From Entomortierella parvispora E1425 (Eukaryota > Fungi > Mortierellomycota), in NCBI GenBank assembly GCA_020891255.1, contig BQFW01000005.1, positions 620,001 through 684,000 of the forward strand: a stretch of 64,000 nucleotides of DNA. Reading direction: 5' to 3'. Numbering within the stretch: the first letter of the stretch is position 1; each line of letters begins with the position of its first letter. Under the pieces are notes generated by a model. The model worked only from the letters and a program-made list of their open reading frames with translations. It was not told the origin of the DNA and ran no database searches. A program made the position numbers and the translations under genes. Below, one piece after another: positions 2,571 through 33,120 of the stretch.

Positions 2571-5500
2571 ATGTCAAAATCAAGTTCAAAAAAGGGTACG
2601 CCTCCATCCCCATGTTACTAGAAAAGGGACTGATCTGCAATGACTCAGCTTTTAACATCATCCCTTCTTTCTTCTAGGGAAACCCGCTGAGGCTCCTACC
2701 AAAGGAGGACCCAAGGGAAAGAACGCAGCTCTGGACGATGCCCCAACACCAGAGCCATCACGGTCCATCTTCCCTGGATGGACAGGGAAAACCCCTTCTT
2801 CTCTTCTTCACGAGCACTGTCAGAAACTTGGATGGGAAAAGCCCACCTTCGACGTCGTAAGCCAGCTTTTCAATTGGATCTCCTGCTGCTTCGACAAGAC
2901 CCCTGGATCAAAGGATGTCTTTTTATTTAACAAGAACGAACTTCTTATCTAAAAATGTAGAAACGCACTTCTCGGGGGTATATCTGCACCGTTGTCCTCG
3001 GAAAGAGAAACAAAAAGACTGGACAGATCGAAACCGCCTCCTTTTCACCCCAAGATATTTTCAAACCAAACTCGGGAGAGGCGCGGCATTATGCAGCAAC
3101 CTATGCTCTTCACAGAGTCAACAGTCATAAAAACATGATGATGGTCTTGCCTCCGGGACCTCGCGATCTCTGGTCCCAGTTGGATGGCGAAAAGGACAAG
3201 GCTGGACCTTCACAGGCGCACATGTATCTCGCCGATCCATTCATCAGTTCCTCAGCCAAAGTTCAACTTCAACAGCAACAGCAGCAGCAACGACTTCAGG
3301 AGCAGGCTAAGGCTAGAGCGGCCACTCCTACAAAGGGAATGGACGATACCCCAGCTTATGTTGGACCCAGCGATTATGCCAGCAAATCCGCCTTGGCTGC
3401 CGGAACTCAGAACGGGGACAAGAAGCAGATCAACTGGGACAAGATGCCCATGGTCCATATGAACCAAGAGATGAGAGCCGAGGTCGAGGATGTTGTCAAA
3501 AAGCAAATGGCAGGCGAGCTCTATCAGGCTGTAAGTGAAATATCAGGTATCTTGAGCGGTCAGACGTTTTGTTTGGCGTTTCCTCTTTTCTGACAAGTCC
3601 TTCCCCATACAGTATATCGAGGAATATGGAGCCAATGGTGAACCCCAGTACAACACTCAACTCTCAAAGGCTCTTACTCGCATGGGATTCCGTGATCGAC
3701 ATGTGGCAGAAGCTCTTCAATACTGCAACGACCAGGCATCTGCTTTGGATTGGCTTTGTAAGTCAAAAATGAATTCAAGGAGAATAATATGATTCTGAAG
3801 GGCTGCTGACAGAATGTTGACATTCACTCTATATTTCTAGGTTTGCACGTACCTGAAGACGATTTGCCACCAAGTTTCTTGCAATCAAACTACAACCCAA
3901 CCATCACCACTATCAACCATACATCTGCCTCTCTTGGACGTGAATATGCCATCAAACGACTCTCAGCCATTGGATTTACCGCGGGAACTGTTGGTCAAAT
4001 TTATGACCTTGTGGGTGGCGACGAGGACAAAGCCATGGAAGAGTTGTTTAAACGCCTGGCATTCCCTAAGGGCGAAATCCCCCCTGATATGGTGCAGGAT
4101 ATGGAGCTAGAGCCCGAATCCCCAGAGTATCTTCAGGAGCTTCGGGAAGATGAGATGCTTGCATTGGAGAGTATCTATGACGATCGATTCAAACGCGAGG
4201 CTGGCTCTTGCGCTAGAATCAAGCTTGATGCGTCCCTTCACAGTGCCAAGAACGCCCCCAAAATCGAACTCGAAATTCGGATACCGGAATCGTCCACCTA
4301 TCCATTCAACCAACCGCCTCTGTTCATCATCAACGAACCCGATCTTCCGTCTTATCTAAGACTTAGCATCATTCAAAAGACAATGCAGTTTGCGTACCGC
4401 TCCATGGTTTTGGCAATGGGAGGCCCGATTGTGTATGATGTGGTGGAATGGGTCCAGGAAAATATCCGGGATATTCTCGATAACCCCCCTAGTTTGGTTC
4501 AGTTGACGGAAGGTCTTGTGAAGATTGACCTTAACCAGGAACCTGAAAGTCAGGATTCTCTTGCGGCACTGGACGACGGCAGCGACCACTCACCCCTAAT
4601 CAAGCCTGTTAGCTCCAAGCCCTCCTCAACCTCTAATGGACCTGCCAAGGACAAGCGAGCTCCAAAACGATTGAACATCAAGCCCAATGGACCAGGATCA
4701 ATTGCCATGTTGAAGGAATACGAGAAACTCAAGGCATCTAATGTCTCCTTCCAGGCTCTTCAAATGGGCCGTGAAAAGTTGCCTGCTTGGAGCTTCAAGG
4801 ATCGCCTTGTCAAGGCTGTCAAGGAGAATTCTGTCGTGATTGTGTGCGGAGAGACTGGATGCGGTAAAACCACTCAGGTCCCACAGTTCATCCTTGACAG
4901 CTGGATTCAGGAGAGCATTGGCGAGCACGCCAACATTGTCTGTACGCAGCCTCGCCGTATTGCCGCCATTGGAGTGGCAGAGCGTGTTGCTGTGGAGCGA
5001 GCGACCGATATTGGGCAGCAAGTCGGTTACGCCATCCGTGGCGAGAACAAATCGAGCAAGAACACAAAGCTCTTGTTCTGCACCACTGGTATTCTGTTGC
5101 GTCGCCTGCATTCGGACCCAACCCTCCAAAACGTTACTCACGTCATGGTGGATGAGGTTCACGAACGCTCTGTGGACTCTGACTTCTTGTTGATTATCAT
5201 CCGGGACTTGATCCGCAAGCGCAAGGATCTCAAGCTGATTCTCATGTCCGCCACAATCAACAGTGAGTTCTTTTCTGGATACTTTGATAACTGCCCCGTC
5301 ATCGAGATTCCTGGATTCACCCATCCGGTCGAGGAACTCTACATGGAGCAGATTATCGCCAGAACCAAGCATACCCCTGACTTCCGTGGAACAAACGTTC
5401 GCCGAACAAAGATGACAGAGGCCATGGAAGAAGAATGGGAGCGCACAAGACAAGAGTATGCCAGTGAAGGATTGGACGATGAGACCATTGCTAAAATCAA

Positions 5501-7354: not shown

Positions 7355-7534
7355 TAGAATATCGTAGCAAACACAACAGCATATAACATATAGACCATAT
7401 ACACTACAACACCTAATATAAGAGCTTTTAGTTCATGCAGCAAGCACAGCAAAGATCGCTTGGCCTTCAAATCTTGCACGTGACTCGCACGACACAAAAA
7501 TTATTTTTCTCTGGTTCGCACGCATGTCGCACGT

Positions 7535-7625
7535 CGCACCCCACACCGCCCCACACACATGCAGACACAGACACACACATACACACACATACACATACAC
7601 ACACACACACAGAGACAGAAACAGA
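7535..7625. repeat. Imperfect (CA)n/(TG)n microsatellite
   Basis: Runs of CACA and CATACACA between the helicase and Pumilio genes. Confidence 0.85.
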
Positions 7626-7841
7626 CAAACCCGCAACGCAATTTGCACACCATTTGAATTTGAATTGGGATTCCCATCTCGCCTTTCTTTCTCTCCTTCT
7701 CTTCCTCCAACGCATCATCTCTGCCTCTTCATCGTCGCAAAGGGAACCAGCCTTGCCTCATCTCTCTGTCGCCATCTCTACTTCCCCCCTACCCTGTGCA
7801 TCTACCTGCTCTGACTGACTAGCTTTCGCCCGTCATCAGTG

Positions 7842-10800
7842 ATGCCCCGCGTACCGATGGATGACCACTATCTCCACAGCAATGCTGCCGGTCATCTCCA
7901 CGCCAGCAACAACGCAAACACTGCCTCTGCTGCTGCCACCTCCACTGCCAGCAATAACAACAGTCTTCAAACTGGGCTCGGCTCCGGCCTCCTTTCTCAT
8001 GGCAGCATCCATCAGCCCACGACCATGAACCAGCAAGGCCAGGTAAGACACTCAACACTCATCTCTGCCTGCACCTCCATCTCCTTTCTTCCCTGTCGAC
8101 TCTTTTTTGTGTGTGTGTGTGTGTTATTGTCAGCTTCGCTGTTGTTGTTGTCGACTATTGCCCGACTGGCCTACTTACGGGGATAACTGACCTCCTGTCC
8201 CCCTGGCTGACTCCTGTACTTATCACTCCTTTTTTTCATGTCGATCCAATGACTTTCTAGCAACTTGCCTCCCTTCTACGCGGCAAACTCAACGACTATG
8301 GAAGCGGCATCCCTGGTGCTAGCAGTGGCTTCGACATCTCACGCTCTAGCTCTGCACCTCCTAACCAGCAGGCCCAATCTCGATTCGGGCTGGGCCCAGG
8401 ATTTGACTCGCAGCCATCTTCGGATCTTCGCTCCGAGTCCGACTACCAAAACTTCTACATGTCGCCATCGCGCCAGGATCCGCGACTGGCGCCTTCGTCC
8501 ATGTACTCTCCCGGGTTGTCCTGGCAGATGTGGTCGAACCCTGGGACGTCTTCGTCTGGACTGGGCGCGGATGGCTTGAAGGGACTGGACGATACCAACA
8601 GCAACAGCAGTCGCTTTGGAAAAGGTAATGGGCTGATCTACTTGATGACGATGAGGAAAATCGCTATAAGCAAAACTGTTCATGGCACTAAACGCCTCTC
8701 TCTCTCCTTCTCTATATTGCTGGTCTCTTTTCTTTGGAATCCCGCTTGAACTAGCAGAACTTGGTCGAGAGGATCACTTTGGCTCCACCTCGTCTGCCCT
8801 CCACCCCCGCGCGGCCGATCCATCTTTGCTCTGGAGACAAGATATCAAGTCTACAGATGCTCCTAGAAGCGAGACCCACTCGCCAATGCTTCCTCGCTAT
8901 GGATTGGAACCCGCCAGGAGCGTTGCATCTATGCCAAGCTCACCTCTCTTTGGGGCTCATTCGACTGACCACATGAGCCATATCTGGGCACCCACAGTTT
9001 CATCGCCCGCCCATGATTTCCCTAGATCGCCTTCCCCGCTTCTCAATATGCCCCACCATGGTCATCACTCTAGTCAACAGCAATCCCATCACCTTATGAG
9101 CCAGGGACTCTCGCCCAGTCAGGCGTTGCGATCGCCCTTGTCCCAGTCGTCGACCTTGCGTCACGGTTCTACGGAAGGAAATGAATTGGATGACCAGCTG
9201 AACGACAATGGTCTGAGTGACGACCTGGACGACCGATCCTCTCATTTAAAATCTGTTCTCAATGCAGCACTGGATGGTGGCGATGAGGAACGGATACCAT
9301 CAGCGGTCAGTGCACGGTCACCCCTGTTTCAGACCAAGTTTGCTCCTCCCCCTCGTTCCTCCTCTACCCCTCCTATTCACAACCGCAACTTTACGAAGAA
9401 CGCACCTCCTGGATTCTCGTTGGATCAGGATGCCGGTCAGTCGGAACTGGAGTTTGGCATGCAAAACATGGGCTTTAATGATTCGGTACGTTGGGCCCAT
9501 CTTCTGATAAAAACAATGTTAGTAGGATAAGGACTTGGCTGACATGATACAATACTTTCTTTGATCTTTACATAGGAGGATGAATTGGCTATCCAGCAGG
9601 CGAATATTAGAAGACAGCAGTATGAGCTTGGCCAGCAGCAGTTGAAGCTGCAACAGATGCAACTTCAACAACAACAGCGTCAGCAGCACCAGCAGTTGCA
9701 TCTTTTGCAGCAAAAGCAAGGCTACCATGGATCCCACACTCCCGTGACAGCCTATTCACCTTATTTCGAGAACCAGACCATGCTGAAGGATCCTAGATTG
9801 ATCAACCCTCAGTACGGATACGACTATAACCAGATGACCCACCCAGGGTTCATGGCCAAGAAGGAGCAATTCGCTCCTGTTCAAAAAGGTGATTGAGAGT
9901 TAAATGGATGGGCAATAGCGCAAGCTCCCTTTCGCGCCTTTAGTTTCAAATTCCTGATCTTTACTGTTTGCCTTGTAGATTTTCACTCTATGTTTGAAGG
10001 GCATGATGAGGCATCCCTAGGATTCAGGGCGAACGATCTAGCCTATGATCCCCGTCGTATTCAGAACCCCGGTCTTAGCTTGACGCCTGATTTCCACAAG
10101 GCATCCCTTCTTCAACTTCAGCAGCAACAGCAACAACATGGTGGCGTCTATTCCCCCGGCCCTTTGACATCTGGCTCATTCTCTGGAGAGTTTTCTGGAA
10201 GCGTCAGTGGTAGAGGCTCGGGAATGAACTCTCCCAATTTGGCACAGATGGAGACTCGCGTCGCGGCCGCTAATGCCGCGGCTGAGCAGAAACTTCGCCT
10301 TCAGTCGCAACAGATTCTCTTGCAGCAACAGCAGCTTCTTCTATTGCAGCAGCAACAGCAACAGCAGCAACAATCACAAACGCAACAGACAGGTGGCTCC
10401 ACTCCCAAGCAAGGACACCATAACCAGTCCAAACAGCAGGGTCGATCTAAGCAAAAGCATCATAAGAACCAGGATAATGCCAAGGGTCACTCTGAGGCAG
10501 AGCATCAAGCTTCATCCTGGTCGAGCTCGAACGCCAGTCCACCTAATAGCCACAGCAGACAGCAGCAGCATCATGCCGATGACGAATCTGGCACAGATGC
10601 ACATTCGGACAGTGCTCATGGTCAACGCAGTGCATTGCTGGAGGACTTTAGAAACAACAAGACCAACAAGAAATACGAACTCAAGGTAAGACTTGCTCAC
10701 TCAGTCTTTTTTTTTCCACTTGCTCGGATAATTGACTTTTCTCTTTGAACTCTCTTTCTCTCTGCCCATTAGGACATTGCTGGAAGCGTTGTTGAATTCA

Positions 10801-28932: not shown

Positions 28933-30833
28933 ACCGCGCTTTTCCTGCATGCATGTCTCGACGGCTGGTCAAAAGCGCACTGCCTCGACCCTATTTTCGC
29001 CATTCTGTTGGCTTCTCCCAGGGGCTGCGCGCTGATCGAAGTGGCAAATTGGTATACCTCCCCCTCTGCCAGAAATACACTTGTTTGGTATTACTGGCCC
29101 TCCATCCGCCCGGCGCTGCGAAAGATTGATTGCCCGGTCCTCTCTTTGGACTACCTAGAATACCTGGATTCGCTCTTCTGATACTCCCATCTCGCTTCTG
29201 CCTCCTGTTTGTGGATGAGCTACTCCTATCTCAGCTCAAGGGAACCCAATCCTAGATCCTCTCATGTTCCAGTCATACCTTTCGGGACAAGGAAAACATG
29301 ATCGAAACCCCTTGGACTGAAAGATTGTGGACTTGCGATCCCTCGCCGAGACCTCTTTTGTCTTGATTTCCTTTACCGGGTCAGTCAAGACACCCACAAC
29401 TCACAAAGATGTTTATGGAAATCATATCCCCCGGGAGCGACAAAAAATGTTTCACTCATCGACTCTTTCCAACTAAAGAGACAAAACGGCGGAGAGGGCG
29501 GACATGCTCCAGCCTGCAACATGCTCGAGTCTGCAACAACATAACTAAGCCCCGCAACTAGTAGCTCAAGCCCGCAGCAATAGCCATAGTAGAGACTATC
29601 GTTTTGACTGAGATAAGCCAACAGACAGGGGGGGAAAGCAACTCTCTGCAGAATCCCAGGAAATGTGCATTTTCAGGCACGACCACCGCCCTTTTCTCTT
29701 TTTTTTTTTTTTTTTTTTTTTGATTTTGTGAGAGAAGATGGGCAAGGAAGATGGTCCCTGCGCGCTCACACAGTTCCACACATTCAAGGGCGCCATCTGG
29801 TCGTGTGAGTTGTGCATTGACTGTCGTGTGGTGTGTTTTCTTTCTGTTCAACTTTTCACCTCAACAACAAAAGGGACGACACAATGAAACGAGCTGCAAC
29901 ACGTTGCGGTTGACAAGAACCCAAAAGGAAAACTGTGCTTCAGGGCCTTCTGCTTTAATACATCTGGGGCGATGAGAGCCCCGACGTTGAACAACGAACC
30001 CACCGACGACAACCACACGTGCTGGTCGGACTGAAGTCGCAGAAAAAAAGATGTTTGGCAGTCACCAAGCGTCCACTCAATTTTTTTCTCTTCGATGTCC
30101 GCCTTGTTGGATTACAGAAGCGGTGCCTGTCCTGTGCGCTCCTTGTCAAGCCAGCCCCTTGTCCCCCCTCCAAAAAATTTCACTTTAACAAAGGTTGAAA
30201 GCTCCAGGATATGATCACCCCCCTCCAGGCTTATTAAGTTCTATGACACAGCCGCTTCAGGTTTTGACCCTGTCAGTACCGGCTAACGACACGACTTTGA
30301 TATTCTCAAACACCGCCAGGAGCATGCGACTCATACAGTGCAACTTCTTCAGCCACCCCCCTCCTCGTCCATGTTGTCTATGGAGAGCAACTCCTCTGAT
30401 GAATATGGCAACGAAATCGAAGAACAGAACTCGTCTCTCGATGCCCTCTCGCCTCTGCCTACCCTTTGATCGTTGATTGCTTTTGTGTATCAAGTCGAAA
30501 CATACCCCCTTTTGCATACCGCCTACTGTACTGGCACCGGAAATGAAGTACCGAGGTAGTTTTCGCGATGCCTATCCTCTTTGATGTCCTCCTATTTGGA
30601 CTAGTCCTGCCTTCCAAAAGCGCCTATTGTGCGAACGCAGTAGAGTCTTGACTAACACCTGCCACGGTCTAATGCCAAGTTGAGCAATTGCCAAGAATCT
30701 ACGACTTTGAGTACCAGCCCTTTTGGTCAGTCGGAAGACTTGATAACATCATTTTTCCGTCACCAGAATATGAAGGCCAAGTTTTGGTCTATGGAGTCAT
30801 GATTTCGATCTGGCACATTCATAGCAGCTCACG

Positions 30834-30865
<32 letters not shown>

Positions 30866-31270
30866 GATGTTCTTCACTGTTGAAAGAGGGAGTGAGGTCA
30901 TTGGGATTTCCTCGGTAATGGCTGCATTGCTTCTTGTACCACCACTGTGGTGCCTCGGTCAAGGAAAAGAGGAGGATGGACAAGCACAGACGCAGCCATG
31001 ACATATTTGTTCGGTGACTGGCCATGAGCATGGGGTCATGGTGACGACATTACCAAGCTTATCTCACTTTGAGTGGAATGACCATCGCGCTTGGATCTGA
31101 CGCGTTGTGCGCCCCTGGGTTTCCCTCCGCTCTCATTTCCCTCCACAGAATCAGGCACACGGCGAGAACTATAAAGATATGTCCGTTTTCCCATCTTCGT
31201 TATTATCAGCTTTTCTCTCGCTCTCAACAATACCCCACCCTTCTTTCCAAGACAACAAACTACAACAAAC

Positions 31271-31597
31271 ATGTGCGGAACCATTGAATGCATTGCCTGG
31301 GTAAGCAGCTCTATCCATCCTCCACCGTTCTTTCTTCTCATGCAGAAAGTACCAGACGATTAACAAACTCCAACTTTGTATCCTTCCCCACAAAAGGACG
31401 GCCTTATCATTGTCGGATTCATTCTCCTGATCGTCTGGATTTTGGGATTGGCCGGAGTTATCACCATCGGATCGACAGCTGGACTCAAGCACATCTTCAT
31501 TGTTCTCGCCGTTGTCTTCATCATCGCGTGGATCTTCACTCGCTTCTGTTGTGGTGGACGTCGCCGCTATGGTCGCCGCGGAGGAGCAATCGTCTAA
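31271..31597 (+). CDS. Small two-TM membrane protein, 76 aa (exons 31271-31300 and 31397-31597); paralogue A
   Basis: MCGTIECIAW|DGLIIVGFILLIVWILGLAGVITIGSTAGLKHIFIVLAVVFIIAWIFTRFCCGGRRRYGRRGGAIV. Canonical GTAAGC...AAAG intron, TATAAA at 31170, and a clear neighbouring paralogue. Confidence 0.85.
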
Positions 31598-32193
31598 GGA
31601 ACTCGCATGGTACATCATCGCCCACCCCTAATTGTAATTCACAAAGATCACTTACTATTTGTATCAACATGCAATAAATCCTGACCTACCTAGTACAAAA
31701 AAAACAGTCTACGCACTCTACATACCTTCCGGCACCCTGAACGTTGTTGTCGTGGCGAATGTTTACAACGCGGTCGAGAAAAGTGCCTCATTCATACCCC
31801 CCTGAAAAATATCGCAACGGAGCACGCGGCGGTCACAGCAAGATCAATCTACTCTTAGTCGCTTTAGCGGACGCATCATGCATCCATTTCTTCAAAACAG
31901 CCGTAATCCCTCAGTCTTCTCTCTGTTTTCCAGCTCATTCACTGTTCAAGCCCCCCCCCACACACAGCTCGGAACGAGCTCCATTCTGTTTTTCAATCTT
32001 GTTTTCAGCATCCTTTTACCTTTTTCTCCCTCTTTTTTCTCAATCTTTTCCTTCTTTTCCTTCACTCACTCACCTCTCACTGTTTGTATCTTTCTATCCT
32101 TCTTGCACTCATTCATTGCTTTGAACAGATTTTGTTCACGTCCAACACGCACCACTAGTTTCCAGTACTCCTGCCTTTTAAGACGAAAAAAGA

Positions 32194-32658
32194 ATGTGTT
32201 TGGCGATCGAGCTTGTAGCCTACGATGGCTTGATGGTCATTGGACTGATCCTCGTAATGAAGAAACACCTCACTTCAAGTCGAACAACCAATTGCTCTTC
32301 CCATGACTAACTCTTTTCTCTCTCCTCCCACCTCCCACCTCACTCAACAACTTGACAGCTGATAGTCTGGATCCTTGCCATGACAGATGTCATCTATATT
32401 CGGACCTACGGTAAAAAACAGAAAAAAATGTCCATGTTGCTACCCTTGTTGAAGGCCAACGATTCCCGCCCCCCTTTTTTCGCAGCATCTCCTTTTTTTT
32501 TGTTTGTTCTAACGATATTGCTGTGGTTTTTTTTGTTGTTGTTCCTGTCACAAGGTCTTGAACACATCTTTGTTGCTTTGGCTGCCGTTTTTATCATTGC
32601 CTGGATCTTCACTCGCTGTTGCTGCAACCGTCGTCGAGGCGTTCCCGTCATTGTCTAG
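32194..32658 (+). CDS. Small two-TM membrane protein, 71 aa (exons 32194-32253, 32359-32410 and 32555-32658); paralogue B
   Basis: MCLAIELVAYDGLMVIGLIL|LIVWILAMTDVIYIRTYG|LEHIFVALAAVFIIAWIFTRCCCNRRRGVPVIV. Both introns are GT-AG with CTAAC branch points, and the spliced product is colinear with paralogue A. Confidence 0.85.
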
Positions 32659-33048
32659 GATGGGCGAAAAAAAAGCACAGAGACAACATACTCTATGTGC
32701 GTTTGACCACTCTATTAGTAATCTCCTACCCACACAAATCTACATCCATAATTAGTCTCGCATCGCAGACAACAGAATTTATTAATCGCTGACAGGCGAC
32801 CAGAAAAAAAAAGAATAAATAATGCTTTTCTTGCGCCAGCTCGTATATAAACCCAGTGAGGGCTTCGAATAGCCTGCCTTCATCTCAAGATCTTCTTGCA
32901 TGGTTGATTCTCAGCAACAATCATATCTCTCTCGCCCGACCGAATCTCACACCAGCAGGGGTAGAATGAACGAGGCCCGGCCTAGGAAAAAAGAGGTGCC
33001 GCAGGAAGTGTTGTCTACCTGGGCAAAAAAAGAAACTGCAAAAGGAAG

Positions 33049-33120
33049 TGCCCACAGCAGGGATCGAACCTGCTACCTTCTGCTTACTAGGCAGACGCTC
33101 TACCAATGAGCTATGCGGGC
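33049..33120 (-). tRNA. tRNA-Thr(AGT), intronless
   Basis: Minus strand reads GCCCGCA TA GCTC ATTGGTA GAGC G TCTGC CT-AGT-AA GCAGA AGGTA GCAGG TTCGATC CCTGC TGTGGGC A. All four stems pair, and T-runs follow as a Pol III terminator. Confidence 0.95.

Follow-up and report, generated by a model that had tools for sequence, protein, structure and literature searches.

Very small membrane proteins have seldom been traced across the domains of life. Pmp3, RCI2 and YqaE (UPF0057, PF01679) are tiny, stress-linked, two-helix membrane proteolipids of bacteria and fungi, and they serve here as a functional analogy only. Proteins of the bacterial lmo0937 or DUF5670 family are about 45–55 amino acids (aa) long and lack extensions. 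In Listeria, lmo0937 is under the control of sigma-B and PrfA, is induced during infection and is bound by the small RNA Rli51 (PMC3225968; PMC11394854). No biochemical role for lmo0937 was reported in the literature that mentions it. We analysed a window of 64,000 nucleotides (nt) from the soil fungus Entomortierella parvispora E1425 (contig BQFW01000005.1, positions 620,001–684,000), to which all coordinates without a contig label refer. Two neighbouring genes at 31271–32658, designated g1 and g2, encode small membrane proteins that probably belong to an old fungal family remotely homologous to lmo0937/DUF5670.

Splicing by hand yielded two plus strand genes separated by 596 nt. g1 (31271–31597) encodes 76 aa and g2 (32194–32658) encodes 71 aa, both with canonical GT..AG splicing. 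The proteins are 63% identical, share a common sequence pattern and contain two hydrophobic helices each, a tandem pair of two-transmembrane microproteins as the initial annotation had described. Exon 1 of g1 (31271–31300) encodes residues 1–10 with a Met-Cys N-terminus. It is followed by a 96 nt intron (31301–31396, GTAAGC..AAG, with TTAAC at 31360) and by exon 2 (31397–31597), which encodes residues 11–76 and the stop codon. Exon 2 contains both helices, the loop with a family-wide His42, a Cys-Cys pair, a polybasic tail and a C-terminal Ile-Val. g2 has three exons. Exon 1 (32194–32253, residues 1–20) is separated from exon 2 (32359–32410, residues 21–37 plus one base) by a 105 nt intron (32254–32358, GTAATG..CAG) after codon 20 in phase 0. 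A 144 nt intron (32411–32554, GTAAAA..AAG) after codon 37 in phase 1 precedes exon 3 (32555–32658), which encodes the conserved His, helix 2, a Cys triplet, an Arg triplet, a C-terminal Val-Ile-Val and the stop codon. The three introns are thus 96–144 nt long, begin with GTAAGC, GTAATG or GTAAAA, finish with AG and carry a CTAAC or TTAAC motif resembling a branch point 36–51 nt upstream of the acceptor. The junctions rest on sequence and on comparison of gene models. Sequencing runs listed for g1 were three in number, all of DNA, and none of RNA was listed for a 1.6 kb stretch of the locus. As first noted, the program-made list of open reading frames contains only fragments of the genes (31271–31363, 31376–31597, 32194–32310 and 32380–32658).

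Spliced g1 is letter for letter GenBank EMPS_03691 (P0001; P-numbers are protein labels and L-numbers contig labels of relatives in this analysis). g2 is identical to EMPS_03692 (GJJ71342.1, P0030), and in both cases the splicing is the same. The initial annotation had called the genes unannotated; both are in fact GenBank coding sequences. A third E. parvispora paralogue, EMPS_01323, lies on a different contig, and all three are labelled "hypothetical protein". What the annotation of g1 and g2 lacks is a family assignment, not gene models. Genomic DNA of E. parvispora was obtained from a line cured of its endobacterium (PMC8759367), which rules out bacterial contamination. Coding sequences were predicted by AUGUSTUS with RNA-seq transcript hints (PMC8759367), which lends indirect support to the two gene models.

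Selective constraint was examined with Nei-Gojobori counts of the proportions of nonsynonymous (pN) and synonymous (pS) differences. Between g1 and Mortierella claussenii P0005 pN is 0.10 and pS 0.65, corresponding to a ratio of nonsynonymous to synonymous rates (dN/dS) of about 0.08. Between g2 and Linnemannia elongata P0050 pN is 0.21 and pS 0.88. Judged by their sequences, g1 and g2 are both intact nuclear genes under purifying selection. The exact GenBank matches, more than 50 homologues in other fungi and pN far below pS place the pattern far beyond chance.

Intron positions were compared using the exact exon chains of four relatives. An intron after codon 10 in phase 0 is common to g1 and genes of M. 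claussenii, E. lignicola and L. elongata (4 genes in 4 species). The codon 37, phase 1 intron is common to g2 and L. elongata P0050. The codon 20 intron of g2 was found in none of the other annotated family genes examined, and it is apparent in a tandem relic in L. elongata that is described below.

A word-indexed search returned 28 relatives of 62–129 aa, all from Mortierellaceae except one unnamed metagenome protein from the Joint Genome Institute (JGI). Mean column identity in the alignment is 76%. With HMMER, a single query sequence run exhaustively against 1.84 billion representatives gave 15 proteins at E ≤ 1e-3. Exact look-ups identified members from Umbelopsis ramanniana, from the chytrids Geranomyces variabilis, Powellomyces hirtus and Rhizophlyctis rosea and from the blastoclad Sorochytrium milnesiophthora, and profile searches added Jimgerdemannia flammicorona and Thoreauomyces humboldtii. 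The Jimgerdemannia protein is already named "Lmo0937 family membrane protein" in UniRef. The family is therefore present in Mortierellomycotina, Mucoromycotina, Chytridiomycota (four genera) and Blastocladiomycota. The Sorochytrium gene is flanked by ordinary eukaryotic genes encoding PIAS-type zf-MIZ, Sec7 and Zn_clus proteins. No homologue turned up in Dikarya, Mucorales, Glomeromycotina or non-fungal eukaryotes, among the word-sharing candidates that the profile searches scored. The initial description of the pair as a fungal family of small membrane proteins of unknown function holds.

Some further features of family loci were recorded. G. variabilis has a head-to-head pair of family genes about 900 nt apart, at 3749–4095 on the minus strand and 5001–5305 on the plus strand of L001/L002. 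Its minus strand gene is modelled as 62 aa in one assembly and 104 aa in another, and the 104 aa form seems to run through an intron. In E. lignicola (L003:1960–4935) and M. claussenii (L006:827–4235) the family gene lies directly 3' of LAMTOR5 and WD40 genes. This neighbourhood was not found around g1 and g2, nor does the locus in the window share flanking genes with the L. elongata locus. The LAMTOR5-WD40 neighbourhood may instead correspond to the EMPS_01323 locus. No second family copy turned up over a distance of about 6 kb from the M. claussenii and Sorochytrium genes. Three proteins from Logan assemblies (P0064, P0065 and P0066) match the family as far as the loop His-Ile-Gly and are unrelated thereafter, as expected from an unspliced second intron.

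The initial annotation had likened the pair to lmo0937/DUF5670. To judge this likeness at the level of the family, fungal members were compared with the curated models NF033488 and PF18919 and with bacterial proteins. 14/18 diverse fungal members matched NF033488 at E ≤ 1, the best at 1.5e-8. Jimgerdemannia P0056 reached 26.9 bits (E = 3.5e-6), and P0036, a metagenomic protein of fungal type, reached 34.5 bits, the sole relative above the curated cut-off of 30. In searches of a database of 5.8 billion sequences with the fungal profile, the named non-fungal matches were all PF18919 proteins, beginning at E = 8.6e-4. With a profile of the divergent members outside Mortierella alone, PF18919 matches began at E = 1.3e-5. 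Alignment of the fungal family with 44 bacterial DUF5670 proteins by hhalign gave a probability of 97.4% and E = 1.4e-11 over 45 columns that include both helices. Because the bacterial set had been chosen by similarity and the proteins are hydrophobic, reversed and shuffled controls were run. The real alignment scored 55.9, the reversed alignment 15.2 (2.6% probability) and 30 column shuffles at most 14.7 (at most 2.4%). Three invariant residues align between fungi and bacteria: the helix 1 Trp, a Gly in the loop and the His with which helix 2 begins. These are Trp24, Gly39 and His42 in g1, and g2 has the equivalent Trp and His. At the family level the similarity is significant, covers the whole domain and is not driven by composition. 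On these comparisons the fungal family is a remote homologue of lmo0937/DUF5670 through a two-helix core of about 45 residues, a conclusion that is solid for the family as a whole.

The two groups share Leu-Trp-Ile/Leu-Leu-Gly in helix 1, Gly in a short loop, His at the start of helix 2 and a basic tail after it, and the match spans the full length of the model. They differ in several respects. The bacterial proteins are about 48–50 aa long, whereas the fungal proteins are 68–79 aa (averages 68–76) and depart from the extension-free bacterial form. The fungal genes have introns. The fungal proteins begin with Met-Cys and have an N-terminal segment of about 10 residues that ends in an invariant Asp, a loop that is 1–2 residues longer, juxtamembrane cysteines, a longer Arg-rich tail and a C-terminal Val or Ile. 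We read the fungal family as a eukaryotic branch that has diverged within the DUF5670 superfamily, and not as a member by curated thresholds. The proposed likeness stood as remote homology of the family, in both hhalign and profile searches, and did not extend to recognition of g1 or g2 by either curated model.

Other small membrane protein families were also considered. DUF1328 (UPF0391), offered initially as a weaker alternative, gave no Pfam match to g1 or g2 even at E ≤ 10 and was absent from the family tallies of fungal members. It resembles them only in being a small bacterial two-helix membrane protein. Pmp3/RCI2/YqaE likewise gave no Pfam match at E ≤ 10, its conserved motifs differ, and homology is not claimed.

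Phylogenetic trees were constructed to examine the origin of the fungal branch. In a tree of 70 sequences the fungi separate from the bacteria with support of 97/87, and Mortierellaceae form a single nested clade (96/92). In a second tree with more bacteria, a Mucoromycota clade is recovered (97/89). The chytrids fall outside this clade, as a group with weak support (85/74), and the blastoclads make up a distinct clade that includes giant-virus-like sequences (100/99). At this coarse level the second tree follows fungal taxonomy. Two sequences, P0151 and P0197, fell among the eukaryotic ones; they were labelled bacterial by length only and lack both PF18919 and the His, and their placement is not to be read as bacteria nested in fungi.

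These results bear on the suggestion of the initial annotation that the genes came from endobacteria of Mortierellaceae. The version considered here is a recent transfer, from Mycoavidus or a Mollicutes-related endobacterium, followed by local tandem duplication. E. parvispora E1425 does naturally carry a Mycoavidus endobacterium (PMC8759367), and bacteria are the nearest non-fungal relatives of the family. However, the family occurs in three further fungal lineages, including zoosporic phyla (Umbelopsis, Jimgerdemannia, chytrids and a blastoclad), and the Mortierellaceae sequences are nested inside the fungal clade. Introns are common to several genera. The cysteines, basic tail and C-terminal Val/Ile are found in nearly all fungal members and not in bacteria, the genome came from a cured line, and the synonymous sites of g1 and g2 are saturated. 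Broad eukaryotic homologues in a vertically inherited clade, the pattern named at the outset as speaking against bacterial acquisition, are what the trees returned. A recent endobacterial origin is accordingly very hard to sustain. The trees and shared features argue that the fungal branch is old and was inherited within fungi. The simplest reading of the bacterial link is a single ancient transfer, either into the stem lineage of the fungi or earlier, and its odds are roughly even.

The arrangement of the two genes was examined to estimate the age of the duplication. Between g1 and g2 pS is 0.84, which is saturated, and no intron position is common to them. In the 70-sequence tree g1 groups with Gryganskiella, Dissophora and M. 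claussenii sequences, and g2 with L. elongata and L. gamsii (96/87). This placement in separate Mortierellaceae-wide groups was not resolved in the second tree, which was thinned. Two assemblies of L. elongata contain an unannotated g2-like copy about 880 nt 3' of P0050 on the same strand (L004:7438–8050; L005 about 7430–8040). Its exon 1 is 55% identical to g2 residues 1–20. Its exon 2 equals that of g2 in length, lies between introns at the two g2 positions and codes for the Trp-Ile-Leu helix. Exon 3 can be read only if the frame is changed, so that the downstream copy of L. elongata appears to be either a tandem pseudogene or a gene that has diverged strongly. Because synonymous sites are saturated, intron positions differ and L. 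elongata has this relic, the g1/g2 duplication is old, and the initially proposed duplication does not fit if it is read as recent and local. The tandem order, with a g2-type gene downstream, appears to be older than the split between Entomortierella and Linnemannia. The g2-type gene is intact and constrained in E. parvispora and has apparently decayed in L. elongata.

We considered whether g2 is a decaying or non-functional duplicate, leaving g1 as the sole working gene. The L. elongata counterpart looks disrupted, and in the 70-sequence tree the terminal branch of g2 is longer than that of any other Mortierellaceae sequence (0.63 versus a median of 0.16). The g2 loop is divergent, and the gene lacks the codon 10 intron usual in the family. 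Yet the open reading frame of g2 is intact and its splice sites are canonical. It retains the family invariants (Asp11, Trp-Ile-Leu, His, Trp and Arg) together with the Cys and Arg runs and the C-terminal Val-Ile-Val. The low pN relative to pS against P0050 and a GenBank coding sequence with the same model also argue against decay, which we regard as improbable.

Several points weigh against reading the locus as two intact, constrained genes of an old fungal family with remote homology to DUF5670 and an ancient tandem arrangement. Neither protein reaches a curated cut-off. NF033488 gave 16.4 bits for g1 (E = 0.007, residues 14–58 aligned to model positions 2–42 of 43) and 10.8 bits for g2 (E = 0.39), and PF18919, with a gathering score of 23.5, gave 10.8 bits for g1 (E = 0.53) and left g2 unmatched. 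When 81 sequences were scanned with PF18919 at E ≤ 0.01, 24/81 matched, 22 of the 81 scanned being bacterial, and nearly all fungal members were missed. The bacterial alignment used in hhalign was built from matches to the fungal profile and is biased toward similarity. Vertical inheritance would require many losses, since the word-sharing candidates scored by the profile searches included none from Dikarya, Mucorales, Glomeromycotina or non-fungal eukaryotes. All phylogenetic signal is contained in about 45–60 hydrophobic columns, the trees were built on about 60–70 columns, and the root was imposed with bacteria as the outgroup. An AlphaFold2 (AF2) model from an 81-sequence alignment placed helices at 2–28 and 38–63 with low confidence (predicted local distance difference test, pLDDT, 60.6; predicted template modelling score, pTM, 0.35). 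Finally, the topology, acylation, trafficking and function discussed below for g1 and g2 are purely inferential.

Scores below threshold and the failure of the Pfam model to recognise most fungal members would also be expected if the fungal family were unrelated to lmo0937/DUF5670 and the likeness arose from constraints on short hydrophobic two-helix hairpins. A protein-atlas feature search pointed to DUF5670 at a score of only 0.68, below the level at which it would be more than a lead, and other tiny bacterial families (DUF6131, DUF3309 and DUF6458) appear there too. Weak matches to other membrane families also occur, for example to FliO in 9/18 members. Convergence does not readily account for an hhalign signal that depends on column order (55.9 versus at most 15.2 in the controls), for matches that span the whole 43-position model with the same conserved Trp, Gly and His, or for PF18919 supplying every named match beyond the fungal ones. 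The fungal-type P0036 also exceeds the NF033488 cut-off. Convergence is thus considered unlikely. Taken together, the probability that g1 and g2 are intact, constrained members of an old fungal family with remote DUF5670 homology, arranged as ancient paralogues in tandem, is estimated at about 0.75.

Eleven metagenomic relatives were examined separately. Ten of them (P0128–P0137) lack the conserved His and have Tyr (nine) or Asn (one) in its place. The eleventh, P0127, retains this His, and its partner in the tree is a blastoclad-like sequence. The ten group with Blastocladiomycota and resemble the fungal family in length class, hairpin, invariant Asp before helix 1 and C-terminal Val/Ile. They differ in having Tyr for His in most cases, no introns and AT-rich contigs with viral hallmark genes, and they are not close to g1 and g2 of Mortierellaceae. 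Two members of this subfamily were located on contigs (L007:2085–2363 and L008:3376–3600) with G+C contents of 25% and 28% and dense, intron-free genes. These genes encode topoisomerase II, a D5-type primase-helicase, an ERCC4 nuclease, methionine aminopeptidase, an mRNA-cap methyltransferase, HMG-box proteins and DUF5872. The gene set is typical of giant viruses, and a viral offshoot of the family is probable. Two scans of IMG/VR, one using the blastoclad/virus-like alignment and the other the fungal alignment, returned no relative. The viral nature of L007 and L008 is putative and is judged from the neighbouring genes.

The viral-type contigs and the 100/99 grouping of the subfamily with Blastocladiomycota raise the question of whether giant viruses moved the gene between fungal lineages or from bacteria to fungi, making its distribution partly horizontal. 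Recent work has documented giant viruses in zoosporic fungi (PMC13533422). On the other hand, the contigs are viral by inference from gene content, the IMG/VR scans returned no relatives, and the Sorochytrium copy lies amid ordinary cellular genes. The Mucoromycota and chytrid parts of the tree match taxonomy, and capture by a virus from its host is at least as likely. Spread by viruses therefore seems doubtful as an explanation of the distribution, and inheritance within fungi is preferred.

The protein sequences suggest a possible mode of action. Hydropathy profiles show two peaks. The N-terminal segment is acidic (Glu6 and Asp11), the g1 loop contains Lys41 and His42, and the g1 tail contains seven Arg. 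Lys plus Arg in the last 20 residues averages 5.6–5.8 in Mortierellaceae, Mucoromycotina and chytrids, 3.3 in blastoclads (n = 3) and 2.6 in bacteria. Cys2, together with two or three Cys directly after helix 2 beside the Arg run, is conserved in nearly all fungal members. A tail Cys is present in 51/52 named fungal sequences versus 1/73 bacterial sequences, and Val or Ile is the last residue in 51/52 named fungal sequences, the exception being one Mortierellaceae row.

By the positive-inside rule, the C-terminus with its strongly basic tail would be cytosolic. A chain that crosses the membrane twice would have its N-terminus on that side too, and the short loop with the conserved His would be lumenal or external. 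The fungus-specific cysteines would thus face the cytosol, where DHHC acyltransferases act, and for this reason S-acylation of the hairpin at Cys2 and at the cysteines after helix 2 is proposed, with the basic tail lying on the membrane surface. The C-terminal Val/Ile resembles known C-terminal hydrophobic export signals of the endoplasmic reticulum (ER) and may act as one. The protein could serve as a small proteolipid or as an accessory subunit, adjusting membrane or ion homeostasis when the cell is stressed, a role suggested by analogy with the sigma-B/PrfA-regulated lmo0937 of Listeria. Built from sequence features and analogy, this outline of topology, acylation, trafficking and role is tentative and likelier to be wrong than right.

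Several further features lie around the two genes. A TATAAA resembling a TATA box lies at 31170–31175 on the plus strand, 96 nt upstream of the g1 start codon, where it may form part of a promoter. AATAAA motifs resembling polyadenylation signals are found on the plus strand at 31673–31678, 76 nt 3' of the g1 stop codon, and at 32814–32819, 156 nt 3' of the g2 stop codon; a role in polyadenylation is presumed for each. A plus strand pyrimidine tract (83% C+T) at 31980–32120, directly 5' of g2, may belong to its promoter or 5' untranslated region. A long A/T homopolymer run at about 30797–30918, 5' of g1, gives open reading frames that contain poly-Lys or poly-Phe on the two strands. A gene for tRNA-Thr (anticodon AGT) lies on the minus strand at 33048–33120, 390 nt 3' of the g2 stop codon.

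Annotated and conserved as they are, g1 and g2 are ordinary genes. The novelty lies in documenting that a family of bacterial microproteins is linked to a fungal one remodelled in eukaryotic style, and in a probable giant-virus offshoot. A more complete history can be sketched speculatively. A stress-regulated bacterial microprotein of the lmo0937/DUF5670 kind would have entered the fungal lineage once, before the chytrids, blastoclads and Mucoromycota split. It would then have been rebuilt in eukaryotic fashion with introns, cysteines facing the cytosol for S-acylation, a polybasic tail and an export-type Val/Ile. Several paralogues would have arisen in Mortierellaceae, the gene would have been lost from Dikarya, and giant viruses of zoosporic fungi would have captured it. 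The odds are somewhat against this history in full. If it is true, one hairpin fold is common to bacteria, early fungi and their giant viruses.

The relevance of these results is modest unless a function emerges, as the genes were annotated already and no role has been assigned to the family in any organism. They correct an attractive story of transfer from endosymbiont to host. EMPS_03691, EMPS_03692, EMPS_01323 and dozens of orthologues gain a family assignment, and NF033488, curated as bacterial, has a divergent, intron-bearing branch in early-diverging fungi. Since Mortierella is transformable and has few paralogues, it offers a tractable system in which the function of lmo0937-type hairpins may be studied.

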